DNA from: Klebsormidium nitens
Lineage: Eukaryota > Plantae > Klebsormidiophyceae
Direction: 5' to 3'
Length of the DNA: 64,000 bases
Assembly: GCA_000708835.1 (NCBI GenBank)
Contig: DF237009.1
Span: 186,001 to 250,000 of the forward strand
Both the position numbers and the translations under genes were made by a program. Shown piece by piece: positions 3,809-54,100 of the stretch; within the stretch, counting starts at the first letter, position 1; every line of letters begins with the position of its first letter. The notes under the pieces were generated by a model. The model was not told the origin of the DNA, did no database searches, and saw only the letters and a list, made by a program, of their open reading frames with translations.

Positions 3809-6800
3809 TCAGATATCCAGATCGTCGTCCGGGTCCTCGTCCGAGTCCGGCGGCTCTTCATCCGAGTCTCTCATGTACAGAATGTGCCCTTGACCAGACT
3901 CGATAACCTCCCCGTTCTTCAGCTTATCGTTGTGCGCTGCAACCGTGCTTTCGTCGCCACTCTCATAGCCTATGCGCCCGTCCCTCTTTCCTCTCGCTTG
4001 GACGCCGGACAACGCAGGTCGGCCGTCGTATATCTTGACTTCGTGACCGTCACCTGGAGGTGTAACGCGGTTGGTTGAGATTGTGCCGCAAAGGAGGTAA
4101 GTCAAGGATCATTAGGAGGTCACGTTTCTCTTATGTTCTCCAGTTTAGTGGTAGAACAGTCTAATTATACTTTTGAGGCAGATCCGAGGACAATTCAAGC
4201 GCAGGGCCGGGAAACCACCAGGAACCAACGCAGCAGTCTCTACGGGCAATCAAAGAACAGTCGCTTGTTGAAGTTGCATATGTTTTCTAAAGCAACCCGC
4301 CGCCTGAAAGGTTAATTTCTTCAAGGCGAAAATGAACAGCGAGCGGCAACCACAAGCTTGGCTCTTTTGTGGCGGAAACGAGTTTTGAACGCGACGGTTC
4401 CACAATTGCCCGCTCGGAGCAGCTTCACCAAGTCGCGAGCAATGCGTCTTTGAAAAAGGGGTCAAACGTGGATTTTGCGCGATAGACACGAGCTTTCAAG
4501 GTTACTGCAACTTCGCTCAATCCTGGCCGCCTGAGCCAAGTTGGATCCGAATCGATTGCAGGATTTGGCTGATGCTCAGAACTTCGGCCGTTCGATGAAT
4601 AGCCTTTGGGTCATCGCACAGCCCAGGTTCTGGCATCGGGCAAAGTTTTGCGATCGGTTCGGATATAGGACTTGGGTCAGGCGGCCAGGTTTGACCGCAC
4701 CTGCAACATTGGTGAAATGTGTCGACTAAAAAAGTGATGCCTAAATTGCTCAAAGCTCACCTTGGTGCTCGTATGGAAGCACGACGCGGGCTCTGCTCTG
4801 CTTCTCCGCTTCCGACAGCTCAAGATTGAAAGGCACCTGGGGCATGAATAGAAGGAGATTTGTCCCAGAAGCCAGGAAAAGTGGATCATGAGAAGGAGTG
4901 TGGAATGGCGGTACCAAAATAGGCTCAGCCTTAGTTTCGTAAGTCGTTAGGCTTTGTGGACGAGATTATACAGCTCGTTCATCAAGCCCTTCCTTATAGT
5001 TTATGTTTAGCTCGTTGAGGCAGTCTGCGAGAAACACGTGGTCTTGAGAAACGCAACACGCGAGAGATACGAGGGCTAGAGCACCAGCTTGCAGCCTGGC
5101 TGGGCTAGGAGGAAAGTTACGGCCCGTACCACTCCGTCAAGCCGTTCATTGCGACATACCGCAAATCCGTACTGTTGTTCAGCAGGCGACACTGAGAGTT
5201 CAACGGTTTCGAATCTGACACAAAGTCACCGATTTACAAGAAAGCAGAGACAAGCAGGGCATCGTTGACGGCATCCGTTCCTTCTCCAAAGCTTCGGACC
5301 AATCCTGAAGACTGCACGAGCGACACTTATGATCGGACGGATTTGATCTGACGCAAAACCCACTTGAGTAGAGAAACAAGAATTCCTCGCCTCCGGAGAG
5401 GTCGCCGTTTTTGGGGGTGGCGCTCTGTCCGACTGCATACTCGTCGAATTTCCGGCGACCAGTTCGATGTGACGTATCGAACCGTTCAATAGCCAGCAAC
5501 AGCATTAACGCTACGATCCAATCACGCACAAAAGCAGGTTCTTACCTCCGGAGTTGTCGCCGTCTTTGCCGAGGGTGGCGCTCTGCCCGACTGCATGCTC
5601 GTCGACTTTTCGGCGACCAGCTCGGCGACGGACGCCGTCCGCTCGATGGGGCCGAAGCGGACGCCCGAAGTCTCCAGCCAAAACTGCTCCCGCTGCAAAA
5701 GCAATGGCCGGACGAGGATTAGGCCGTCCGTGAATCCCCGCTCTTGAAGGGAAAGCTCAGGTCGGGTAAAAGAGCAAAACGGGCAACTCATAGCGAATTC
5801 CTCCAAGAAAAGAGTTTCGGAAACGGAATGAACTGTATATGCCCACCTCGTGACGGACTTTGCCCTTATTCGTCTTGTGCCGTACGTGGATCCTGCCGTC
5901 CGTGGAACCCAACTCGTGAAAAGAATCCCATGCTCAAACAAAAACTCAGAACGGGCAACTTCTACCAAGAATAATCAGAACATTTTCCGCAAACAAGTAC
6001 TCTGCAAATCCCCACCTCGTGTCGAACTTTGCCCTTTTTCGTCTTGTGCCGTACGTGGATCCTGCCGTCCGCGGACCCCCGCTCGTCCAGCAGCGGGGGC
6101 GCCTGCACGTCGACGACCGTGCTTGCGAGGCGCTCGAACGCCGCGTTTGTGCGCGCGTCGTGGAGGTCGGCGTGCAACAGTGTCAGAACCGTCGATATGC
6201 GACCTGCATATATAGCCTGATAATCATGAATTTTCCCATGTACCATTCTTTATTTTCGAACGTATTTGATGCTTCACGTAAAACCTCGGTGCTGGTGAAG
6301 TTAGAAATAAGAAGCAGACGGCACGTCCATCAAAGTGCTCGCGGGGCGCTCAAAGGCCGCGGTTGTGCGCGCGCCGCGGAGGATTGCATGGAGGAGCGCC
6401 AGAACTGTCGACATGCTGCCTGCACTTGAGAAGACGTCTTCGTTATCAGGCTCCTTGATGCTTAGCGCGTGAGAGTCCCGGAGCTCAGCGAAGTTGAAAT
6501 AAAACGTGTCGGTCCTTTGACGACTGTGCTCGCAAGGGGCTCAAGGGCGGCGGTCTTGCGCTGTCTGTGAAATATCGCGGGCAAACGCGTCAGATTGGTT
6601 GATATGCGGCCTGCATGACTGGACTAGGGCTCTGAGTCTTCAAGCTGCCGTTCGACGGGGTGTTGACTTCGTCAATGTATTGGCATCGTGTGAGGTTATT
6701 TTTCGGGGAGGGGCTGAAAGGGCCGACCGTGCACCATTGTAGATTTCAGCCCGCGGGAGCGTAACAGGAATATTGTGGTACATATCAAGGTTCGACGAAA

Positions 6801-30602: not shown

Positions 30603-33600
30603 TCAGACCATGGACAGCGGCCGCATGACCCGAGCGTAACTCGCCATCTCAAAACTCTTCTGCCCGGTAGACACGCCCGGTGGAAAACTCCGGGCATAGT
30701 TCACATCCATGGCCGAGCCAGCGCCATAAAGTTTGCCGTTCGCCGGCGGGTAGCTCTCCCCGTAAAACGGGAAATAAGGCCCCGGCGGGCTTTCTGGATA
30801 GGACACGTTAGCAAAAGCAACGTCACCGAAAGTGACGTCAGCCGCGGTAACTCTACCAAAAGTGACGTTAGCAAACGGGCCTCGGGAGGTTGCAGGGGGG
30901 CTCCCGCTGAAAGGGAACGGGCCCATTATGCGACTTTCGTTTTTGACCAAAGAGAGCCCGTTGTAAACGGCCCGGTTTGCTGGGGGCGGGATGGGACTGG
31001 GGCTGGTGGCCGGAGGAGTTCCCCCTGCGGCGGTTGGGGTCGTTGGAGCCGAGGAAGTTACGGCGTCGAACAGGTCAAGAAGGTTGAGGGTCTGCGAAAA
31101 AGAGGAAACCTCTTAAGGTCAGCTCATACGTCGGAGATTGCAGCGTGTGAGAAAGTTCTTGTGCAACGGTCCAAAGACACGGCTGGACAGATCGCCTGAT
31201 CCAGACTGTCACGAAACAGACTAACGAAGACCTCCCAAAAACCTGACCAAACCTCTGTGTACAAGGGCCGAAAACCCGGTGTGTCTCATGCGTTTGACGG
31301 AGGCTTGCGTTATATGGAAAAAGATGGGGGACAGAAACACCATTGAAACGTGAGAAGCTGACCCATTCAAGGGTCAGTATATGGGACAAGGATAAGGGGA
31401 ATCCCGAGTAAGGAAGGTCCTACTAACAATCCTACTAACAACTGCTGATTTCTGCGCAACTCAATCTGGTACGGGACAGGATCCTGATCCGAGCGGAATC
31501 TGATGCTTACCTCCTGAACGGACAGCTGCAACCGGAACTTTGGCCCGTCGTAGTGGTGCAGAATGGGCCGGAAGTGATCCTCGTCCAAGGGACTGCACTG
31601 CTTGCGGACCTTGATGCGGACCTGCAGTGCGAAGTGTCCGATCTTAGAATCTGCAAAAGCGCCACGTGGCGTTCGCCTTTGTATCGTTTCGCTGAGGGAC
31701 TAAATATACCCTCAAGCAAAACACGATGGGAATCTTCAAAGATAGAAAAGTCAGCACTGAAAAGAATGACGAGTACACATCAGTAAAGCCTCGCACAAGA
31801 CTCTGACATGACTCCATTCAGAATTCACTGGCTAATGGTAGACTGAAGCGGACCATCGTAACGACAAACTTGTCTGGTTACTGCTAAATTCCTATCCGAA
31901 AAAAGGTCAAGAAGGAATATGACTCTTTAGGCTCCTTCAGCCCCAGATCGTTCGCTTTTCTACGGCCTAGAATGGCCCGAGTCAGAAGCAGATGGATGCA
32001 AAAAGAACGCCGTTGGTATGTCGACGGTGTGACAAAGTTGGCACTTCCATTCTGTCCCTGCTACTTAGCCAGAGCGCTGACAGAATGAAGATCGTCCAAT
32101 AGGTTGGAAAGTCGAACAGAAAAGTAGAGAGTGCCAGGGAAGAACCACGACCGAATTTCATTGTGTTCTGAATGTCTGCTTTTAGCTGCAGTCCTGCGGC
32201 ACAGCAACCTTTAAGCAGCCGAGTTTCGCTTCCAAGAACTGGTTCGAGTCTTCCAAAACGTCCTTGTCCCCTACCAAAAGCAAACGCAAAGAATTTTTCA
32301 CCTGAGCTGGAAATCTGGACTCTCCCTTGGTCTTCTTATCCTCCCACGCATTTGGATCGAGGTTGGAACCTCCAAAACTAGTAGCCTGCAGACGCATAAA
32401 CAAAGTGAGATAAAGCAAACAGACTGCCAAGTTGGCAATTCGGATTTTCGGAAACGAGCTGGCCAACTAGCTTCGCTGACCCCCTGCCTGGTAAATCAGT
32501 GCGTAGATGAAAGAGCAGATCCAACCAGGCCAATATCTAATGAGGTGAAATCAAAGAAAGGCACTTCAAGGGGATCTACTGATAGCATGTGCAGGCCAAA
32601 CCTGTCCTGAAGTTGACGCCTATTCTGTAAGATCATCTATAGTATCGCAGGATCGACTAAGGTTGCGTCTTACTGCAGATACAGCAAGTAAGCTTCTGAC
32701 ACCACACAACGAGCTGCAAAGATCCGGCTTACGACTTCTGACACAAATTTTAAGCTGCACGGATCAGGTCTCACCTCATATACGCCGTGCAACTGATGTG
32801 TTGTGTAATTGTACAAGAAGAGGGGCAGTCCTGGCTGGATTGCCCGCACAGAGTCACGGTACCGCTGAGGGAGACCTGTGAGAGGGTAGTGACGTCAACA
32901 AGGCTGCCCTTGCAAGCTTCTTTTCAAAGAAAAGGTCTTCCAAGCACTCTTCTTTTCAAGCATGAAGGCAGGATTTTCTACCTCCTACCTCAAGGTGTGA
33001 AATATCAGGTGAGCTTCGAATGTGTTCAATCTCCGTGAAACTAGATGTGAAGGTTCTGGCTAAAATCTGCCATGCAAGTTACAGGTAGTTAATGCTAGCT
33101 TGTGAGGGATTCAATGAAGAAGTCACTGTGAGGGCCAGTGATTGATTGCACAACAAACTCAAAGGCCAGTTCTTGACCTGCAGTGGTCATGACACTTGGA
33201 TGAGCTCCAATTTAAGGGCAGCACAGTATGAGCTCAACTTCTGAAGTTGTCTAAGGGCCATGGCCAAACATAGAGGTGTGAGCAAAGAAGTAGACTGTAA
33301 TACGAAGCAACGAGCTTGTCAAGACGAATATCGTATCTCCAGAAGGAGCGTCGCATTTCATGAAGGACCAAAAGACAAGGAATGACAAAGCATGGAAGTC
33401 GTGATGCGTGCAGGGTGTGTGCCTTTGGTGCGATCCTCGTGATGACCTTTTCAAGTGGTTGCAAAGAGATTGAGACCGTTCTACAAAGTGAAGAAATTTT
33501 CATGACATGTTGCCAAAAAAACTACTCTATTTTCTCAGGAAACTTCACCTTGAACAAAACTCATGAATCAAGCTTGCAAAGAGCCTCACCAATCGACGCA

Positions 33601-36439: not shown

Positions 36440-38145
36440 AATGACGACTTTTGGCCAATCAGAGGTCTGCTTTAGGATTCGCTGAGTACTCAGGATCTTG
36501 AATGTGTCAGACAGCCTCAATTGTCTCCGGTTCCGACGGAAGACTGGCATGCACGAAGATAATCAATATGTAGGATAGGTATATGTGGAAAGAAGAGCCA
36601 TACATTTCTTCAAGGCCCCTGCCCTGGAACGGGTGGGGTTAGATCGGGGGTTGAGGTTGGGCGCGGGGGTTGGGCACTGCTGCTGGGAGCAGGGAGATCC
36701 AGTTGGTTAGGGTCTACAAATGTTACAGGGGAACAAGGTTGGGTTAGGTACCGTGACAAATGCGCCTATGATCTATCCATAAATCCAGATGCCTCGCCGC
36801 TCAACAAATGGTGAGATAAAGAGCTCCGGGATCACACGCGCGGCCCTCGACGCCGACGGTGGCCGGCCGGCCCCCGCTATAGCGGCCGCGCGGGCGGCCG
36901 CGCCGGTAGTCGCTGGCCGCCCGAGCTAGCGCCGCGGCTCAAGATTGAGCTTCATGCAGCTACATAGTACGTAGCGCCAGCGCTTACCCTTGGCCCCGCG
37001 CGGCCCAGGTGGCTGCACAATGTGTACGTAGCATATTACTAAGGTAGAAAAGAACATCATTTCAAGGCTCGGCGATCTCAGATGGCAAATGCGAGCCGCA
37101 ACTTGAAGGTGGGGGCCCGTGGATCAATGAGAGCGTACATAAGGTGCTTGGCATGCCGGGCACTCCGAATTAGAGACGTAGCACAAGAGTTCCAAGGAAA
37201 AGGAACTCAACTAATTGCAAACACAAATTAACGCGCGCCCATCTTCTAATCATATATTTGTCTGCTCATCCTATTTATCAATGTAAGCTAGCTCCAATAA
37301 CGTTCCTAGTGCAAACGCGACGAGTGCGCTTGATTGCCTGACTTGCAGTTAACGCATGTTGCACATGTGAGAACCATGACATCCGACGTGGTTCATGCAG
37401 TACTTATCAGGCTTTTGGTGCTCTGCATATTGTGCTACGTGCAACAAGTACTCAGTGCATGGCTAGGCAATGTGACGTCCAACCAATACTAAGAGTCCAC
37501 AATCGATCAATCATGATACTATATATATCAAGGGGTCACTTGTCAATCAAAATAGTGTTTAAGCAGCCAGCTAGAATGTCAAGGCCACCCGTACGTATCT
37601 TGCTTCTCCTAATAATCGTTCTAGCTGCTATGACATCGATCATAAGCGATCAAGTTTCTCCAATCGGGCCAAACTTTATTATTTATAGCAAGTTCGCCTC
37701 GAGAAGAAACTTATTTGGCAAACCAAATCAACTTTCCGGTACTATGGCATTTTGCCATCACTTCACTTGGAGCGGCGGCTATTACGTGTTACTGTAAATC
37801 TTCAATTTGACAAACGCAACAGCCTAGTACCCCTTAAGAAAATCCATCTTTTACCCTACGACCAAAGCTCAAAGAATCAAGCCACTATACTTGGTTTGAA
37901 TCCGCCTTACGTATGTTCCACGGCCTTGGACCAGTTTATGCAGACACTGCTCCTGGATTGAACGCTTGAGGGCCTCGAACAACAGGCGTTCTCCCTATCA
38001 TCGATCCTCCAGAAGATGCCCCATTGTTTGCCCAGTCCCAATCACAACCACAACCTCGACTCCGTATTTGACCGACACCCCCAATGTCAGTTGCGCGCTA
38101 TCGCATTTTTCGCTTCCGAGAACGACTCCCACCGAGTTGTTCATG

Positions 38146-41100
38146 TCAAGGCGAAGTGCGAACACTCGATCCGGACACGGACGCGAGTGCGACGCCGTTG
38201 ACCGGAGACGGACGTCCGGCGTCCGCCTCCGCCTCGGCGAGGAAGCGCGCGTACTTGTAGTGCGCGCCGAGCGCGGCGCCGACGATGCCAGCCTCGTTGC
38301 GCATGGCGGCCATCACGACCGGGGTGCCCATCGGAAGCTCCAGGTAGTGCGAGAACTAGAGGAGCGGACATTTTTTCGGGTTTGAGGGAGAAGTCAGATT
38401 TCCCTTTGAGGACTAGGAGCAACGTGTCATGTTATGTTAGTGATGGGAAGGGGTATGGAAAGAAGCAATGGAAAAGAAGATTTGGATTGGAAGAGAAGTA
38501 CGGTGCATTATTGATTCTCAAACTTGGAGCAGGACAGGTGGCAAGCGGAGCCAAGACACGTTTGAAGTGGAGGCAAGAACGTGAGCGAAATCCTATGTAG
38601 ATTCTCAGCGCCGTGGACCATCAATTTCGGAACAGGGCTAGCGCACGGTCCTCACCTTCTCATCCTTCTTGCTGACACCGCCTCCCATGATCTGCAAAAG
38701 ATTTGCGCAAGGAAATCAGCAACTCAAAGCGCTCCTCTACTTGACGGAGAAGCAGCCAGCTTAGCCCGCCTCTTGCCTTACACCGGCCTTCGTCGCTCGA
38801 CCGGTTGGCGCTTTGTCCGAACAAGGGACAAAGTTGTCAGCACCGGTCAGTGATGAGCAGAAATTGGGCTCGGGGAATGTCACTGCCAGTTGTGCTTGTC
38901 GGCGACACAAGCGCAGAGGGGCACAACTATACAGTCGCCGTGTTATGTTAGGGGAACCGGTCCCTCGACGCCCTCTTTCCGTATCTTGAGACTCCCGTGG
39001 CGGCGTGCCTCTCGATCGAACGCGCATAAGACAAGTACGCAAGAACAGGATCAAAAGCTCCCCATAAATGTCGCTCAAAGGAAGAGCTTACAGCTAAAAG
39101 AAGCCTAGTGGCAGTTCTTGAAGCGCCTATATGCTTTTGAAAATACTCAGGCTCAAGATAGGGTGCCGAAATGCTATGCAAGGGCTCAAGATAAGGCCTG
39201 GCGAGAGGACGCGCGGCAGCTTGCCTGCCTTACGCATTTCGTGGAGTCTGGATATAAGAAGACGAAATCCGGACAAATCTGATAAGCTATGGTAGGCGGC
39301 GCTAGAGCTTGCCCAGGTACTGGCTGGCGCGAACTGTGGCGTTAAAGAAACTGCAACGAATGCATAAGCAATTGACTGGCTCCCGATAAGGTCTGGCACG
39401 AGGAGGCGCTACAGCTTGCCCGAAGTACTGAAGTTGACGCAGAATGGGCCCTCCAGATTGGGCCCTCCGAATTACACAGACAAGAGTTTCAAATAAGCCG
39501 GACGAGGACAATAAGCTACGGAACTAGAGTTAAGGTCTGGCGACAGACGGGGCTCCAGCTTGGCAAAACATTGGCTGACGCGTATCTTTGGCGCATATTT
39601 GACCATGGATGGCGTGTAAGCAGGACGTAACGAATACCCTACGAAAACGCTCACGATAAGGTCTGGCGAGAGCAGGCGCTCCAGCTTGCCAAGGTATTGG
39701 CTGACGTCTTTTCTGACTCGCCAATTTGTGTATATCAACAAACAAATACAAAACAAATCACAGACAAAACAAAACACAGAATTCAGCCAGAAATCGTAAG
39801 CTTTGGAACTACTCACGATAAGGTCTGGCGACAGCAGGCGCTCCAGCTTGCTGAGGTACTGGCTGACGCATATTGGCCCCCGAAAATGAGGAAGTAAAAG
39901 TTATAGATAAGCTGGGAGCAAACGATAAGCAACGGAACAACTCACGATAAGGTCTGGCGAGAGCAGGCGCTCCAGCTTGCCGAGGTACTGGCTGACGCGC
40001 CCGGCCCACTTCTTCCAGCTCATGTCCTCGCGCTCGCGCGCCGCCGATGACGCCAGCTTCTCCGCGACCTCGCCGTCCATCTCGATGTGACCCAGTTCTA
40101 GATTGGGGACCTTCACAGAGAGCAGTAAAGGAACTTGAAGAGAATCGGTAGGCCAGACTTGACAAGTAACAGCGTAAGTAGATTCCCGCCGTCCATCTCG
40201 ATGTGACCCAATTCTAGATCAAGGACCTGCACCATGATTCGTGGAAGAACCTCAATGACCAGTAGGCCTATTAGCTAAGAAAAGTGAGGTCAAAAGGGGT
40301 TCGGAACCTCTAAGCCCCAAATGCCTCACCAACTTTCCTTCGATATACAAAGCGGTTCCGAACGAGTTACCAGGATCTGATCAAAGATTTCCGACGGGAT
40401 TGTAATCCTGTGACGATAATCAGCCCTAATATGTGGGACTAGATTGAAGTTAAAGACCCCAACACCCTGAAAATGTTACCAACTTTCCCTTGATGTACAG
40501 AGCAATTCGATTTCCATTCCGACTGTGGTCCTAAACTACGTCTTCGACCAGATACCAACATGTATCAGAACAATCAGAATTTTGAACGAGATTGGAGACG
40601 GACAGGAGTGAAAATGCACCCAAAGAAATCAAGACCTAACATTTCAAGAGCCTTACCAACTTCCGGATCCCGTTTCCAATCCCGGTTCCAAACGTCGTTA
40701 CCAGCACCACCTTACCCCTGGAGTTCGCACAAAGTTTCCATGGTCCGAAACCCTGAAATCGGTAGCCCTAAATCCTAAAGCTTCTAGAACCCTAGGAACG
40801 CTTACCAGCTTGCCCTCCACATAGAGCGCGGTTCCAATCTTGGTGGTTCCAGAGGTGGTTAACAGCACATTTATGGAACCTAGATTACATGGCGGTACGT
40901 TCTTAAACTCGAAACAAAACCCAAAACCAAACCAAAACCCAAAACGAGACCAGAATTGAAGTGTTAAAACCCAAATAACGAAATGCCAAACCCCAATTCT
41001 TACCAGCTTCCCTTCGACGTACAGAGCGGTTCCGATCCCGGTTCCGAACGTGGTTACGAGCACCACCTCCTCTTCGTGCCCCCGCCCCTCGCCGAAGTTC

Positions 41101-43998
41101 ATCTCCGCGAGACCCGCCGCATCGGCATCGTTCAAAACGACCACAGGGCAACCCGTCGCCTCCTCGAACAGCTTCTGGGCGTTGATGTTAACCCATGTCT
41201 TGTCAACTGCAACGCGGCGTTGTTTGATTGTCGTTAACGGACTGCGAAGCCGCTTATCAGCACACTAAGCATGTCTCAGCAGGTGAAAAACGTTGTACGG
41301 CAATTTGTTGTTTCCTCGATTTGAGGTGAGCATACGTAAAGCGGGGTCATAATCTCTATTGGTTCGTTTTGGCTGGGGATTCGAACGGCCTCCCAGGTAA
41401 CATGAGTTGCTGTCGTTTCGCCAACTGCGACATAGCAAAACTTTAATTGTGCGGATTGTTCCGAATATCAGATTCCAAGTTCAGCTGTGGAGGAAACGAA
41501 AAATCGGCCACGCTCCGTTTCACTCCTCCACCAAAACGTCAAACTTTTGCAGGCTGCCAAAATCGTGCTTCGACAACTTTATACTGCGGATTCCGCCCTT
41601 GGAGGGAACCACACAGTTGACCGAGGGTCGTTTCACTCACTGTTGGCTGCAGTGTAAACGACCCCCCGCCGCACGACTGACGGCACACCAACCCCAATAA
41701 CGCCCTTGAACTGCAGATAAGTCCAAAAGCCTGGTCAAGAGGGACGGCATCCCGGAGGGGCGGTCTGAACATGGGCTTCAGAAAAGCAATCGGACGGCAT
41801 TTCGAACAGCAGCTTTGGAAGGCAGTTGGACGGAGACGGTGCAGAAGTGGGTATATTTGAGTGGTAAACGAACTGGTAGGCTCAAACGTACAAAGCAGGC
41901 GGGGGTTTTTGATAAAACATTCAGGACGACGGGTTTGGACGGCGGGTTTGGACGGCGGGTTTAGGCAGTGACTCCGAAGAGCAGGCTATTGGCGGAAGTG
42001 GGACGGCTCTACTGGAGATTAGATATGGATCGAAGAGCGGAAATTGGTTCGAAGACAGAGAAACGGACTTGAGGTTTCAGGCGGCTGTACTAGGAACAAC
42101 AGGGGCTTTTGATGGCGGCATTGACTGGGCGGTCGTAGAGGAGGTTTGGCAAAAGATGCTGCTTAACCGGCTCAGAAGGGGGCTTGAAACCGCCTACCTG
42201 ATCTGCGGCCTCAGATGTGCGCTCCGGACCGTTCCTTTTCTTTTCTTTTTTCATTTTCTTTTTTCGAACGGACAAAATAGGTACAGCTTCCCAACAGACA
42301 ATACGAAATAAGATTCGGGGACAGAGAGGTCTGATACAGGTCGGATAGGCAGGACGGATACCTTTTACTCACGAAGTACAAAGAGAAAACGTGTTCATTA
42401 TTGTGCATCATGCTGGCAGGTCAATTTACGAATGACACGTGCCGGGGTTGCGAGCGGAGATGGAGGGTCGGAAAGGACAGAACGTACCTCGAAGTGCTCG
42501 GCCAACTGCTTAATCACGCCTGCGATCGCTTCTGGTGTCGCCGGCTGCGGCGTTGGGATGCGGTGTCGCTCCGCCTGCAGCTCGCCAGTAGTGATGTCCA
42601 CTGGAGCCGCTTTGACACCGGTCCCGCCAAAGTCGACCCTGCAAGATGGAGAGCGGTTGTTTCAAGCTTTTCTCGTTTTTACCTAAACTGCTAATCTTAC
42701 TCCTAGGTTATGTAGATGAAGTCTGTCCAAGATGATCTTTCAATGACTTGAAATCGGATTGCTTCACGTGTCGCCTTTCAAGTAAGTACGTTCTTCAAGG
42801 CCTTTACACCAATCATGCAAAGTCAAGCTGCCAACTGAAAGGTAGGGCTGGGTTTCGGCTGGTTTGAAGGTAGGTTTAGGGCCACTTTGAAACTCATTCA
42901 GAAGGATTGAAAGGTTGATAAGCTATCCGTAAGTCAAGTTCAAGGGTTCTTTTTACACAAAGTGTTGTCAACGTCAATGTTGCACGTTTGAGTTGGATTC
43001 AGAGTCGGGTCTAGGGCTGGGTTTGGGGCTCGCTTAGGGCTCGATTACGTCACTCAGAGGTCCAGAACGGCATCTGCTGGCCCCGCGAGAGCTGGAGATG
43101 TAGTGAAAGGTTTGAGGATGCAGTCTGATGAACCCAGAGACAGGAAGAGTCACCCATACGAGCTCAGCAATTGGTGCTTGGATCACAAGTTCCAAAGTCG
43201 ATCATTTCCGCCGTGGTCTCAGAAGTAGAGTCTCCCTGCGCTTGCAATGCGTTTGAACGGAATGTTCCTGGGCATCGCTTCGCTCTACAAGGTTGGCAAT
43301 TTTGGCGGACACAATGCCAACAAATGCCTCAAAATTCAATTTCTAACCCCTATATGGAGGAACAGCACCGAAGGAGGACGCAAGAACTGCTGAAGAGAGC
43401 GAGGAGAAGGAGATATTTGAGCACTCAGACTTTTGTCGCCAACCCCGAGAATCTGGGAAAACGGCGGGGTGCCTGATAGTTGTGCATTGGCAGAAAGGCC
43501 CCTCCCTGAAAATTGAGATTATGTTTAGATGTGCCTTAATTTTCAAAACCGCGTTCAACATTGTCTTTTCTTGTAACTCTCACTACCCAATCAGATCCTC
43601 CATTTGCAGCTTATGAAAATGCTAGAAAAATGCTAGAAATGCAGAAAAGCTCACCCAAGAAACACATCCCCTTGCAGCGGCACAACATTCTTCAGGTCAA
43701 TTGACGTCCTGTCCCCCCACTTCGACGTGCCTGCAATCCCGCACATCTCTTGCGCACGAACCACCATCGAAGGCCTTGACGGTTCCTGTCGTCGCTGAGG
43801 TAAGCATTCTGCAATGCTGTGCTTGGAGGCTGCAAAGGTGCTGCGGTTGCTACTCAGGCTCCGGGTGCGAACTAGAGACGGAGAGAAGGCGTGCGCAGCG
43901 CAATGGGGGAGGTTTGGTGAGGATTCTACGTGGCAATTTTGCAGCCGGGGAGTTGTTAGGGAGCCCGCCGGCAGGGGGCACCGGCTAACAACACTCAT
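38146..43998 (-). CDS. ppgK: ROK-family polyphosphate glucokinase / polyphosphate-ATP glucomannokinase with a putative plastid transit peptide (~392 aa, 7 exons)
   Basis: complement(join(43998..43655,42638..42488,41710..41641,41206..41004,40110..39946,38691..38656,38355..38146)). Motifs: [102 protein letters not shown]. The ~105-aa N-extension is Ser/Arg/Ala-rich and contains MVVRA. Confidence 0.92.
39190..39945 (-). repeat. Six donor-side echoes of ppgK exon 5 (3' ~55 nt plus intron start)
   Basis: Units resembling gtcagccagtacctcggcaagctggagcgcctgctctcgccagaccttatc|gtgag end at about 39817, 39655, 39530, 39385, 39281 and 39190; divergence increases with distance from the exon. Confidence 0.92.
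40185..40868 (-). repeat. ppgK intron 4: one acceptor echo of exon 5 (40185-40230) and four donor echoes of exon 4 (ending 40806, 40657, 40480, 40330)
   Basis: Copies translate as cag|[13 protein letters not shown]; [11 protein letters not shown]|gtaagc; [14 protein letters not shown]|gtaagg; IALYIKGKL|gtaaca; [10 protein letters not shown]|gtgagg. Confidence 0.9.
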
Positions 43999-44300
43999 TG
44001 CTGTTTTGCTGCTTCAAGAATTGAATTGGCGAGGAAGTAGCTTCTCAAGCAATCCTTTGACCCCGGCAGCTTGATTTGGGCTGCAAGCAATCTCCCTGCC
44101 TTGAAATAGACAATTGGTCCCGATTCACACTCCCCGCTTCGCACACAATCTTACTGTAGCAAGCGAGTGGCTCCGAGAAGTTGCTGCTCAAAAGCAATTG
44201 CATTAGACTGGAGTGCCGACTTGTATAATTGTAACAGCATTTTAGAACCAAGGTCCAACAGGTCCAAGGACCAAGGAGCAAGCTGACTGGACACTGCAGT

Positions 44301-48100: not shown

Positions 48101-51100
48101 CGCTCAAATTCAGTACAGTTATTCGGAAGCCCGCAAAGCTCAACCAATTCAACTAAAGCAATGCGTTGCTCTAATCTATAGAAATAAGCACATTCGCAAT
48201 TAGAATCTTTGGTTTTAGTAAGCTGCTTATAGAATCAACAAGAATGAATGGATTAAGAGATTCACCCCTTTTCCTTCTCCTAACCTCTTTAGGGCTTGAC
48301 CAATCAAAAAAGTAAAATATTTGTTGTATACGGTAGACTGTACTGCCGAAGGGCACCTGAAAGCCACTCACGGGATAGGCATCTTTCTTCGAGCACATCA
48401 TTGATCCCAACTCATGGGAAGCCCCCGGCCCCAAACACCAAAACATCAAAGTCAAGAAAAATAATAGGAAGCCGAGATAATAGTAAGGTAACCGCACTGG
48501 GACGGGTAGAGTTAGTTTGGTGATAAGGGTGGGTATGGGTGCGGAGCGGGTGTATTCTTGGGTTAGGGTTTTTAGTGTTTGTCGGAGCTTACTATTATCT
48601 TGGCTTACTATTATCTTCCTTGAGTTTTATCACCAAATCCAGGATCTTCGGAAAGCCGCAAGGTTCCATATAGAACCCACCAAGCTCCACACCCCACCAA
48701 CTGACAAGAACAAAGTACGACAAGAGCGACGACAAAGCTCACCCAAAGTCCTTCTTGTTGAACACCCGCTCCAGCTCATTAGTTGCCGCGTCTAGATCGC
48801 CCGCCTCGGCCCGCCCGAGCGACGCCGCCGCAAACTGCCGCCCCCGCTTCCTTTCTCTCCCCGTTTCTAGTTGCTCCGCCCTCCAGTTCGCCCACCGCTG
48901 CCGCAGTCGGCCCACGTCAAACGCCACCCGCATGTCGTCGCTCGGCGCTTCCCTAGGGCTGTCGGTCCGGACGTCCGGAGAAGGGGTACTGGCGTCCGTA
49001 GGGAGGGGCGAAGCGTCCGGAAGGGATGCACCGACGTCCGGAATGGTTGTACGGCCGCCGGAGAGGTTAGGCCGGACGTCCGCAGAAGGTGGACGAAGAT
49101 TTCGGGGGGCCTTTCGGACGTCCGAACCTGGTGTTTGCGCAGCGGTTTCTCCGAGCGAATCCCTTCGGCTCGCGCCAACATCGTGTTCCACTTCGTCTTC
49201 TAGCACCTCCAAACCTCCTCGCTCGGGTGCGGCTGTTGCCGTCGGAATCCTTTCCCCCGCAGGGGGCTCCGCACTACCCGCCTCCGCCCCCCCCGACCGT
49301 CCTCGTTTGTTTCGCACCAACGCCGTTCCAGTCCGCTCGCTCTTTGCGGATTCGTCCGGTGATCCGTCCGCAGACCCCACACCGTCTGAATCCTCGCTGT
49401 CCCTCAAATCCGGACATGTGTCCGCCGCTCTGCGGACGTCCGGAGGGCCCGCGCTCGGCTTCCCTCGCACAAGGAATCCGCTCAGCGACGCCTGCCGGGG
49501 CTTCTTTCCGGGGGCAGTTTCGGCCGCGAGGGATCCCCCATTCCCCGACTGAGGGATCCCCCAGGGCGCGTGCGCGGCTTTTTCTGGGGCGGCTTTGCCA
49601 GCGGCCGGTACGTTTAAGAAGGCGTCCAGCGGCACCGGCGTCCGAGCGGCGCTCCGGACGCGTCCGAAGTGCGCGGACCTCGTTCCGGCCCCTCGTTCCG
49701 GTTCCGTTCTCTCCTGGGGAGTGTCTTCTTGCTCATCTTCTGACTCGTTTCTTGGGGGCTCTGATTGTGGAGAAGCTCGAGCCCCTTTTCGAGTTTCCTC
49801 TCCTGAAGGAACCTCAGCGCCACTCCCCTCTTCGTCATCTTCAGCATCTCTCCGGTCCTTGTTCCGTCGGCTCCTCGTTCCGTTCCGGCCCCCGATCTCC
49901 TCAGCGGACTCTGATCCCGCCTCCTCGTCTTCCCCTTCTTCCTCTTCCAACGCGTCTGCAAGACTCCGCATCTTTCTCGTTACCCCCCCGTTCGTCTCGT
50001 CCCCCGTTTGCTCTTCAACTCCCGGACTCAGAGCCCGCCGCTTTCTTGCCCCCTGACTCGGTTCCCCCCCGTTCGCTTCCCCTCCCGCCGAAAACGCTTC
50101 CAGACTGCGCTTTGTTCCGTTCTTCCCTTTACCGCGGGTTCCTTCCTCTTCCATTTCTCCACTCCCCCGCCCGTCTCTAGAACTGCGCTTCTCCGCATCC
50201 CTAATGTCCCCATCTTCTTCGCTCCCATCCTCTTCTAAACCCACACTCAGACTGCGCTTCCTTTTCTTTGCATCCCCTGTTTCTCGCCGGGCCCCCCTCC
50301 CCTTCTCCCCCATATTCTCCTCGCTCTCGTTCTCACTCTCCTCGTCCCCCCCCTCTTCTTCGCTGTCGCTACTTTCCGCCGACTCGTCCTCGTCTCCCCC
50401 CACGCTCAGAGTGCGCTTTTTCCCTGCCTTTGCCCCCCCCTTTTCTTTCGCCGGCTGGCTCTCTTGCACGCGGAACACGTACTTGTCCGGAGCGTACAGC
50501 TGCTCCAAGGATGTCCGGAGCGCGGATAAGAGATCCGCCTCCGTGTGCAGAAAGATCTTGCGCTTGTCGGGCGTCACGTTGACGTCATACGAGTCCTGGA
50601 AGAAAGGCACAGGTGGCAAATGAGTAGCGGCCTTCAAGCAATTGTTTCTTAAACGTCTAAGTGCACCAAGGACGTTTGGAGAGTGGAGAGGAGGCCTGCC
50701 TCCGTGTGCAGAAAGATCTTGCGCTTGTGGGGCGTCACGTTGACGTCATACGACTCCCGGAGAAAAGAGAGGCACAGGCGGCCTATCAGTGATGATCTTC
50801 GAGAGGTTTTTCCAGAAGCGTAAAAGTGCTCCAAAGACGTCTGGGGCGCAGATAAGAGGTCCGCCTCCGTCTGCAAGAATTTCATGCGCTTGTCGGGCGT
50901 CAAGTTGACATCATACAAGTCCTTGCCAAGGAGGCAACGAACGGATTCAGGTGCTGGTCTACAAACGGCTGGCTCATGATGAGATCAACCAGTAGATCGT
51001 TTCGGAAGACGGCGAGCCTCAAACAATCATAGGCAAAGCGTGGCAACATTGTCAACGACTTCCCTTCGGAGAAACCAGAAGGGATTGTTCGCGGAAGGGC

Positions 51101-54100
51101 GGCCCTGCTTCCGGAAGAAACGACTTCCAACAATGCGCACGACATTTCGATCCTTCCACGATGGACCACCGAAGAGATGGACACCTAGAGGAGGGTCCTG
51201 ATTCGCAGCATGGGCGAAACGATTCGTGGTAGTAGAACAACTACCGGCAATAGACTCAACACTCCCTGATCGCAAAACCAGTTGCAACCTTTGGCTCACC
51301 GTGGGCAGCACAAAATTGAGAACCGCCATCGGGTACTGCAGGCTGTTGAACGCGCGGTATGTCTCGTTGAGCAGCTTCCCGACTTTGGGCATCTCCACGG
51401 GGCGCCCGTTCACGAACAGAAACTGCCGGTCGCCTGACGCGCGGCCGCAGCCCGCGCCGGCCTTGGACACGAACCTGAACGAAGAAATCGACAGGCTCAA
51501 TTTCGGGCGACCATGCGCTCACAATTAGGCAATGCGGGACTGGGGTTGCTGTGTCGAATTATGCGTCGATTGTATGAAATTGACCATTTATGTACGAATA
51601 CTGGCGGTCGCCCGACGCGCGGCCGCAGCTCGCGCCAGCCTTCGACACGAACCTGCACGTGGACGAGAAAGTGTCAGTCGTATCTGATGAGATAGCTTTG
51701 CGAACTTCGCTCCATCCGACTGCAAAATGAGTCTCTAACATCTACTCTCGCGGCTTAGCCCGCACATTACTTCTCTATGGAAAAAGAAACTCCACACTTA
51801 CCCACAACTTTCGTGGAGGTCCCCGTTCGCACCTCAATGGCTCCAGGTGGCCGCGGGAATCGGCCCAAAGCACAAAAACAGAAGCAATACTTGCAAGGTC
51901 GTGAACAAGAAGAGCACTAGAAAGGAGCAAGTTCAAATTCGTGATAACTTACTCGAAACCTTTGTGCAAGTCCCAAATCGCAACCTCTACGTGGCCCAAA
52001 CTTGCGGCAAATTTAGTTTCGAAGCACACAGAGGAAAGTTGACATTTCAAGCTCTTGGGGGCTGAGAAGCACCAAAATGAGCAAAGCAAAGAAGTCTGCT
52101 TCATCTCACCCGGTGACTTTGTACAAGCCCCGAGCGCCGCGTTTATGGGCTCCAAACTGACGCAAACTTGGTCCCAATCCTTACGACGGAACCGAAGCTT
52201 CCAAGCTCAAACACTAAAACAGCATCAGATTGAGCAATGCCTGAAGTTTTATTTCTTCCACCCAATAGTGTATGCGAGTCCCCGATCGCCACCTCTATGG
52301 GCTCCAGGCTGGCCGCGAACTCAATCTTAGATCCGAAAGATGGAAACTTCCGCTAGGATAAAAGGAAAGGCTTTGTTTTCCTTACCCAGTAACTTTGTGC
52401 GAGTCCCCAATCGCCACCTCAATCGGCTCCAAACTGGAGGCAAACTTGGTCCCGAACACGGTGACAATGTTGTCCCGGACGCTGCGGCCGCCCTGCGTCT
52501 GAATGACGGTGCTGCGTCCGGCGGACCCAGCTTGGTTTGTGCAGATGAGCCGGACGTCCGTAGAGATCAGAGCGTACGCCTGGAAGCATAAAGAAGGATA
52601 ACATGACTTCGGACGCCCGGCTAATAGTAATCGTGGGAGCAGAAGAAGGAAGATGGTACTGCCTCCGGCGGACCCAGCCTGGTTCGTGCAGATGAGCCGG
52701 ACGTCCATGATGATCAGAGCGTACGCCTGGGAGCAGAATGAAATAACTTCCGGACGTCCGTAGAATGCAAAGCGTAAGCCTGGGAGCATACAAAGAGAGT
52801 GGTGGGGCCAGCGGATCCGGCTTGGTTCGTGCAGATGAGCCGGACGTCAATGGATCTCAAATTGTACGCCTGGGAGATATCAAGCGCTTGCCAAGATTAC
52901 AGAACAAAAGAAACTGATCATAGCTTGGGATGGGAGCAAGACTTTCAAAATGCAAAAGCTACACGGTTTTCAAATCGTGTCTGAAATTCTTGCATGATTT
53001 CTGACGCAACCTCGTCAAGCAGCAATATTTTGGAGCAGAAGGTTGGCATGAGACCCGGAACATCCGGATCGATTGAGCGTCCGCCTGAAGGCATAAAAAG
53101 GACGATATGAGATCCGGACGTCCGAGGAACCTAAAGGCGTACACCTTCGAGCGGAGCATAAGAAGGATGATCAGATTCGGAAGCCCGTAGAGAATCAGCG
53201 TACACCAGTGAGCATAACAGATGATTTGAGATACAGACGTCCGAAGAGATTGAGGACGACTGAGCTCCTCGCGGAAAAGCACTTGCTCTCGCTCCATACG
53301 TTGGGGTTAGAGCCCAATCGGAATACGTGAGCGCACCTGGAGCAGCGTCAGCAGTTTCCCATACTCGCGCTTGACGTTGCGCGTGAACTCGCGGTGGCGC
53401 ACCGGCAGCGGCGAGAAGAGCTTGCCCACCGCCACTGTCGTGCCCACAGCGCGCGCCACCTTGCGCGAGCTCGCCACGCGGCCGTTGCGGTCGAACACGA
53501 GCTCCGTCGCAACGGGCTCCGCAGCAGTCCTGAAAGAATACGGTCTTCGAAATCATCATCCGCGAACCTCGGTGATAAGCAGTAACGCAAAAGCAGGCTT
53601 CTGGGCGAGGTACACACTTGCGGGTAAGGAGTGATGGGGCCCAGTCTGCCAAGGGATTGATGACAAGGAGATTGCAACCGAGTCCTTAGCAATACTGGAA
53701 GCGAGAGTGTCAAGTGAGGCGATGTTGGAAGCTGACTAAGGTTTGTTGTCCTCCATGTACTGCCACTTCCAACACCAAACTGTCAGGAAATGTGTCAAGA
53801 AAGTCCGCCCAAGCAGCCTTGATCTGTGCCACTCAGAAGAACGAGGCCTTCAGGCCTTTCAATATCCCCAAAGTTGCGCAGTGCAGCTCAAGGCATGCGA
53901 TCAGACCCCTGGTCGGACGCCCGTTTTTGAAGACATGCCACAAGCCCCAGACCCAATCATATGCCAAAACGCTTGTATTTGGAGTTCTCATGATCAGAAC
54001 TTTGAGTATCCTGAAGAGCTCAAACCGCAAGATAGCTTGCCTCGTTGTGATGGTGACATCAGCAAGCGCACACAGCGAGCTCAGCGCCTCCCCACGGAAG

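Follow-up and report, generated by a model that had tools for sequence, protein, structure and literature searches.

Polyphosphate glucokinases in bacteria and in Klebsormidium

In a 2025 review, PPGMK was described as occurring exclusively in certain bacterial groups, and land plants as having only hexokinase (PMC12696579). The paper on the polyphosphate glucokinase (PPGK) of Anabaena speaks of the PPGKs of "non-eukaryotic organisms" (PMC4252912), and PPGK is treated as bacterial and cyanobacterial in a review of algal polyphosphate (PMC7332688). The subject of this work is a PPGK gene of the alga Klebsormidium nitens. It lies on the minus strand, from 43998 to 38146, of a stretch of 64,000 nucleotides (contig DF237009.1, positions 186,001 to 250,000, assembly GCA_000708835.1), which is called the window here and to which all coordinates refer. 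The gene is a bacterial-type PPGK of the ROK family (EC 2.7.1.63) and is nuclear, intron-bearing, and expressed. Its identity is already annotated in NCBI, and the enzyme is not of a new kind: the NCBI/UniRef entry P0172, "polyphosphate glucokinase ppgK [Klebsormidium nitens]" (308 aa), is 100% identical to residues 85–392. New are its evolutionary history, a correction of the start codon, and the description of the leader. PPGKs have been reviewed as exclusively bacterial, and an expressed, constrained, intron-bearing clade of them is present in streptophyte algae, the relatives of land plants; it adds a eukaryotic group of members to an enzyme family already known. The locus as a whole is best explained, with a probability of about 0.7, as a working nuclear PPGK of bacterial descent, which was gained once and long ago and whose product is imported into an organelle.

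The best relative with a solved structure is the polyphosphate/adenosine triphosphate (ATP) glucomannokinase of Arthrobacter (1WOQ; 235 bits, E 9e-69). In whole-protein scoring, the deposited P0172 stood for residues 85–392, and the exons were scored singly. The likeness to 1WOQ spans the kinase core from end to end (P0172 residues 29–269 to 1WOQ residues 14–258). All substrate and catalytic motifs are common to the two proteins, and neither has, after ExGH, the Cys-rich zinc motif of classical ROK glucokinases. The algal protein differs in being encoded by a spliced nuclear gene, with ~111 extra N-terminal and ~40 extra C-terminal residues. It also does not contain the short 1WOQ insertion with the heptapeptide PEAPAAG, which was proposed to permit mannose phosphorylation (PMC4252912). 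It contains a two-residue insertion (P-x-G-T-P) that is common to all eukaryotic copies, in both of the clades (A and B) described below (P-x-G/K-T-P with clade B included).

Land plants have hexokinases in the plastid stroma. These are a possible functional analogue, as they phosphorylate glucose in or beside the plastid, but they belong to a different family and are ATP-dependent. Chlorophytes and red algae have a further glucose kinase of bacterial type, the group A (non-ROK) glucokinase, which is also of another family and ATP-dependent (PMC12696579). All1371 of Anabaena sp. PCC 7120, a strictly polyphosphate-dependent PPGK, has the family and seven motifs in common with the algal protein, judging by its published description; its similarity to actinobacterial PPGKs is just 46–47% (PMC4252912). 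The algal protein and its best bacterial matches are 55–62% identical. A precedent is offered by PPK1 and PPK2 in simple eukaryotes, bacterial polyphosphate enzymes that became fixed in green-lineage nuclear genomes and whose eukaryotic copies carry N-terminal extensions. However, they represent another enzyme family; the paper describing them does not mention glucokinase, and no shared targeting signals were detected in that study (Whitehead et al. 2013, PMC3680246). In literature searches, no publication was found that connects PPGK or ROK to Klebsormidium or to streptophytes.

Gene structure and transcripts

As read from the sequence and the list of open reading frames (ORFs), the gene has seven exons and six introns, and its coding sequence is 1179 nt long (392 codons). 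Position 43998 is the A of the start ATG, and 38146 is the last base of the stop codon. All exon borders follow the GT..AG rule, and the reading frame is continuous over the seven exons. The features are as follows.

43999–44050, minus strand: 5' untranslated region (UTR), minimum extent, from RNA contigs
43655–43998, minus strand: exon 1, 344 nt, ending in phase 2; start ATG, leader, and ~30 conserved residues before the kinase core
43759–43998, minus strand: transit-peptide-like presequence, codons 1–80, ending at VRA↓Q; from composition and the open frame in the close relative L081
42488–42638, minus strand: exon 2, 151 nt; phosphate-1 motif DFGGTGVK and TPQPATPE segment; 62.4 bits to NF045942 positions 5–54
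41641–41710, minus strand: exon 3, 70 nt; Closterium has an equal 70-nt exon with equal phases
41004–41206, minus strand: exon 4, 203 nt; NDADAA (catalytic Asp) and GTGIG (phosphate-2); 73.6 bits to NF045942
39946–40110, minus strand: exon 5, 165 nt; glucose motif PNLELGH and SWKKW segment; 61.1 bits to NF045942
38656–38691, minus strand: exon 6, 36 nt; GGGVS adenosine motif; Closterium has an equal 36-nt exon
38146–38355, minus strand: exon 7, 210 nt; NEAGIVGAA (connect-2), a poorly conserved C-terminal tail of ~40 residues, and TGA stop

Parts of the window are contained in 20 public runs from 7 studies, and 4 runs from 4 studies were mapped on 38100–44050. These runs were labelled as RNA by guess only, and it is the intron-skipping contigs in them that demonstrate transcripts. 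All six joints were found in the 4 runs exactly where predicted (CT..AC when read on the plus strand): 38355/38656, 38691/39946, 40110/41004, 41206/41641, 41710/42488, and 42638/43655. The six introns of the initial annotation, which was made from the letters and the ORF list alone, are thus confirmed to the base. The depth of spliced or exonic contigs was 100–260, compared with ~5–15 for intron-covering contigs. The contigs extend 83–203 nt past 44050, which places the ATG at 43998 within the mRNA.

Enzyme family and phosphoryl donor

The curated equivalog model for polyphosphate-glucose phosphotransferase, NF045942, matched P0172 with 319.7 bits against a cut-off of 250 (E 1.3e-95), over model positions 3–241 of 242, and the single exons matched it in order over positions 5–241. 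This family has been described as exclusively bacterial (PMC12696579), whereas the members reported here are eukaryotic; all of the algal homologues tested pass the model, with 270–335 bits. On the model of the ATP-type ROK glucokinase, TIGR00744, P0172 fails with 97.7 bits against a cut-off of 260. Pfam applied to the single exons gave just a sub-threshold ROK match (19.4 vs 22.9 bits). In the ESM Atlas, the structural model has a predicted template modelling score (pTM) of 0.81, and it resembles a bacterial PPGK cluster with a TM score of 0.98.

The kinase motifs listed for PPGKs (PMC4252912) are intact in K. nitens, and all of them fall in invariant columns of a 16-sequence alignment (A1): DxGGxxxK (phosphate-1), NDADAA (connect-1, with the catalytic Asp), GTGIG (phosphate-2), PNxExGH (glucose), GGGxS (adenosine), and NEAGIVGAA (connect-2). 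The claim of a full-length PPGK with intact motifs therefore holds, with E-values far beyond chance on both NF045942 and 1WOQ, and the three peptide segments that had been quoted for it were all found in the exon translations. Two Trp residues (SWKKW) are near-invariant in A1. They lie in the segment equivalent to that of W193 and W198, which have been proposed to be essential in the PPGK of Mycobacterium tuberculosis (PMC4252912); the spacing of the latter two, compared by published numbering only, is unlike that of the algal pair.

The same kinase might act in vivo as an ordinary ATP glucokinase, with polyphosphate not being available in its compartment. All but a few of the characterised PPGKs are bifunctional with ATP (PMC4252912), and the ATP-binding motifs (adenosine, connect-1, and connect-2) are intact in the algal protein. 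On the other hand, the protein scores above the threshold of the PPGK equivalog model and below that of the ATP glucokinase model. Moreover, no land-plant copy appeared among the matches listed, and land plants seem to be without large polyphosphate stores (10.1101/630129). An enzyme that spends only ATP is a possibility to be taken seriously, although a somewhat unlikely one.

Relatives and bacterial origin

Exon 4 was compared with 1.84 billion representatives, and three word-index protein searches were carried out among 5.8 billion proteins, in each of which the best 120 of 8000 scored candidates were listed. The best matches among the 5.8 billion proteins were Closterium, Mesotaenium, and algal transcripts, with 62–66% identity. 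Among the matches listed, the algal ones reached 339–384 bits with the K. nitens protein, and the bacterial ones at most 326 bits. Homologues were found in several Closterium strains, two Mesotaenium endlicherianum genes, EukProt Trinity transcripts, Logan transcript contigs, and environmental contigs. The eukaryotic matches listed were only streptophyte algae or transcript and metagenome sequences; no land-plant, chlorophyte, red-algal, glaucophyte, or other eukaryotic protein appeared among the best 120 of 8000 candidates. The gene is not confined to this alga, and orthologues in Closterium and Mesotaenium indicate vertical inheritance within streptophyte algae.

Named bacterial sequences were obtained by scanning one genome per species and taking the best 80 loci. 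The best loci listed came from Chloroflexota, Deinococcota, Verrucomicrobiota, and many Actinomycetota, with 46–60% identity. In a quick tree of 120 rows, five algal sequences formed a clade (SH-like approximate likelihood-ratio test, SH-aLRT, 99) in a weakly supported (89), mostly actinobacterial group. In a careful tree of 83 rows, the algal clade (support 100/97) stood beside Myxococcota, Entotheonella, and Latescibacterota-like rows (94/92). Four eukaryotic sequences were added for a careful tree of 79 rows, which contained ten in total. Clade A, with K. nitens, was supported by 100/98, a paralogue clade B by 100/100, and the ten eukaryotic rows together by 97/84. They lie within a cluster of 24 rows (96/87) with Myxococcota, Entotheonella, and Latescibacterota-like neighbours, and a long stem leads to the eukaryotic clade. 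As clades A and B each contain Closterium and Mesotaenium, the duplication is old. Clade B is represented by the proteins P0027, P0375, P0377, P0394, and P0405, which come from Mesotaenium, Closterium NIES-68, and algal transcripts and have long leaders of their own.

These trees support one clade of eukaryotic PPGKs nested among bacterial sequences, which suggests a horizontal bacterial origin. An actinobacterial donor, as suggested by the quick tree, was not upheld by the careful trees. When the eukaryotes were forced together with the main actinobacterial cluster, the approximately unbiased (AU) tests gave a cost of 25–28 log-likelihood units and p values of 0.152 and 0.084. This union is disfavoured, though the AU tests do not reject it. 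The old transfer proposed in the initial annotation is borne out, as are the bacterial type, the domestication, and a leader that looks like a targeting signal; its assignment to the actinobacterial type is not.

The product of Closterium NIES-53 was mapped on its own locus by exact spliced alignment, which gave exons of 498, 70, 371, 36, and 159 nt, compared with 344+151, 70, 203+165, 36, and 210 nt in K. nitens. The correspondence of the exon lengths places introns 2, 3, 5, and 6 at the same position and in the same phase, while introns 1 and 4 are not present in Closterium. In an environmental algal contig (L083), introns 2–5 coincide in position with those of K. nitens, and the close relative L081, from a JGI metagenome, has all six. 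Because intron positions are shared, the intron-bearing gene predates the split between Klebsormidiophyceae and Zygnematophyceae. Land plants are placed as sister to Zygnematophyceae (PMC9915684); on that placement, their apparent lack of PPGK would be a loss.

Bacterial contamination, or a very recent transfer to Klebsormidium alone, has nothing but the bacterial affinity of the protein in its favour. The six introns are spliced, their positions are shared with Closterium and other algae, and the eukaryotic stem is long. The same-strand neighbour is a multi-exon DNA mismatch-repair gene, so the context of the PPGK gene is eukaryotic. Contamination or recent transfer is refuted by the splicing, the shared introns, and the tree.

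A different source would be the cyanobacterial ancestor of the plastid, by endosymbiotic gene transfer. Cyanobacteria do have PPGKs (PMC4252912), and the trees were built without cyanobacterial sequences. Against such a source, no cyanobacterium was found in the best 80 genome loci, nor among the named matches listed in the three protein searches, and red-algal, glaucophyte, and chlorophyte homologues were likewise not among the matches listed. A plasmid collection searched for a cyanobacterial PPGK gave seven matches, none of them cyanobacterial. Cyanobacterial PPGKs are reported mainly from heterocyst-forming lineages and are only 46–47% similar to the actinobacterial ones (PMC4252912). On the loci and matches listed, an endosymbiotic source is improbable.

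According to the preferred explanation, the gene would have passed from a bacterium to an early streptophyte alga in a single event. Spliceosomal introns and a targeting leader at the N-terminus would have been added to it, and a later duplication would have given rise to the two paralogue groups. Since then, the gene would have been inherited vertically in Klebsormidiophyceae and Zygnematophyceae.

The kinase core is under strong purifying selection. Its ratio of nonsynonymous to synonymous substitution rates (dN/dS) against L081 is 0.05 at a dS of ~1. The values are 0.29 for the alignable part of the leader and 0.47 for the C-terminal tail. Low-complexity, poorly conserved C-terminal tails of 40–100 residues are found in all clade A proteins and not in bacterial PPGKs; the tail of K. 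nitens lies at 38149–38238.

N-terminal leader and start codon

The kinase core starts at about residue 113. A transit-peptide-like extension of ~105 aa had been proposed at the N-terminus, and ~111 residues, which have no counterpart in bacterial homologues, do precede the core; only the first ~80 of them are transit-like. Residues 1–80 contain 24% Ser plus Thr and 11% Pro, with 9 basic and 3 acidic residues, while the core contains 9% Ser plus Thr and has a net charge of −9. The ~30 residues after the leader are conserved in L081 and probably belong to the mature protein.

The deposited P0172 omits 84 N-terminal codons (43747–43998) and begins at Met85. If translation did start there, the enzyme would be cytosolic and the upstream frame untranslated, and the Mesotaenium model P0170, with a short N-terminus only, would agree with this. 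However, Met85 is a Leu in L081, where the upstream frame, which starts with a separate ATG, stays open over 123 codons. The first ~70 residues of the leader have diverged in L081, with several indels, and the frame has been kept despite a dS of ~1. The segment beginning VRAQE(M/L) is conserved between the two algae, and the mRNA contigs take in the upstream ATG. Extensions of 98 to ~135 residues are found in four other lineages. That of P0171, a complete transcript ORF, has 98 aa, and that of Closterium P0167 has ~115 aa; P0169 had been called in bacterial style from a non-ATG codon, and an upstream Met in its transcript gives ~135 aa. Among the clade B proteins, P0377, also a complete transcript ORF, and P0394 likewise have long N-terminal extensions. 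A start at Met85 is thus improbable, and the leader is most likely real coding sequence, with the start codon corrected to the ATG at 43998. No ATG occurs within the 100 nt upstream of it. Further upstream on the minus strand, ATGs at 44203 and 44240 open upstream ORFs of 52 and 29 codons, of which the longer ends ~47 nt before the main ATG.

The open frame in L081, the replacement of Met85 by Leu, the conserved VRA↓Q, and the extensions in four lineages all speak for the leader as a targeting signal, as had been proposed. The segment V-R-A↓Q resembles the stromal processing site. The protein would start at the ATG at 43998 and enter an organelle, most likely the plastid, and the leader would be cut near VRA↓Q.

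It is also conceivable that the leader targets mitochondria, or both organelles, instead of the plastid. The leader is basic and acid-poor; plastid and mitochondrial presequences both have this character and are hard to separate in green algae. Its content of Ser plus Thr (24%) and Pro (11%) does not favour an amphipathic helix, and its end lies near the stromal processing consensus and is conserved in L081, both of which are indicative only. A mitochondrial or dual destination is rather unlikely, and import into the plastid would remain the preferred reading.

Possible role and points against it

It may tentatively be proposed, as a rather doubtful but far-reaching extension, that streptophyte algae run an organellar, probably plastid, polyphosphate economy of bacterial parts, which would include the two PPGK paralogues. 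Stored polyphosphate would phosphorylate starch-derived glucose without ATP, in darkness or during rehydration, and the module would have been discarded toward land plants. Higher plants seem to be without large polyphosphate stores, whereas Chlamydomonas has them (10.1101/630129). The gene provides a handle on whether eukaryotes spend polyphosphate directly on sugar phosphorylation, and in which compartment. It also provides a handle on losses in phosphorus and energy metabolism as plants moved onto land.

Several points weigh against the picture of a polyphosphate-using, plastid-imported enzyme of old bacterial descent. Most characterised PPGKs also use ATP (PMC4252912). The phosphoryl donor cannot be read from the sequence, and the use of polyphosphate is presumed. 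Algal polyphosphate is known mainly from acidocalcisomes and not from plastids (PMC7332688), which also favours an enzyme that works with ATP. Import into an organelle is putative, and the choice of the plastid over the mitochondrion is a judgement. The deposited NCBI model, as noted, starts at Met85 and has no leader, and a 5' UTR that is colinear to 44203 or 44240 would contain two upstream ATGs. The trees are unrooted and do not include cyanobacterial sequences. Finally, we infer the absence of the gene from land plants from the lists of the best 120 matches.

Neighbouring genes and exon-edge copies in introns

In the neighbouring mismatch-repair gene, the DNA_mis_repair domain extends on the minus strand over 48739–51500, in at least 2 ORF-sized exons (51027–51500 with E 7e-9; 48739–50637 with a weak match). 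An ORF at 32182–32466 on the minus strand has a weak match to Dev_Cell_Death (DCD), with E 6.6e-4 and 19.9 bits, below the cut-off of 27.8.

Introns 4 and 5 contain copies of the exon edges next to them, which were identified by sequence comparison.

40187–40868, minus strand: decayed copies of the 3' end of exon 4 with the donor site, inside intron 4
40219–40187, minus strand: one copy of the 5' start of exon 5, 97% identical, inside intron 4
39185–39869, minus strand: six decaying copies of the 3' end of exon 5, ~90–165 nt apart, inside intron 5

The copies in intron 5 comprise the last 26–65 nt of exon 5, most of them with the GT donor, and are 96, 95, 92, 89, 88, and 85% identical to it. 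Tandem Repeats Finder did not report the arrays of copies in the introns; they were found with blastn and tblastn. The main transcripts, as represented by the RNA contigs, ignore the copies in both introns. In one run (X1), an alternative joint, 38691/39655, was considered as an isoform and rejected, as only 30 letters lie on its short side. The 30 nt before the donor are the same at the true end of exon 5 and in the intron copy at 39706–39650 (96.5% identical over 57 nt), so this joint is an ambiguity of placement.

In the orthologue of Closterium sp. NIES-53, copies of the same exon end (…LQPDLIV) are found in the homologous intron (L082, 4165–4257 and 4299–4463), so the copying of exon edges is not confined to Klebsormidium. 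In the deposited Closterium models P0006, P0166, and P0168, the start of the last exon (FLHLLSVPGGTPIVAAEM…) occurs two or three times; such copies were apparently taken for exons when the genes were modelled. In L081, copies of the end of exon 2 are present in intron 2 (3973–4050 and 4159–4209). These are missing in K. nitens, and the arrays of copies thus turn over between close species.

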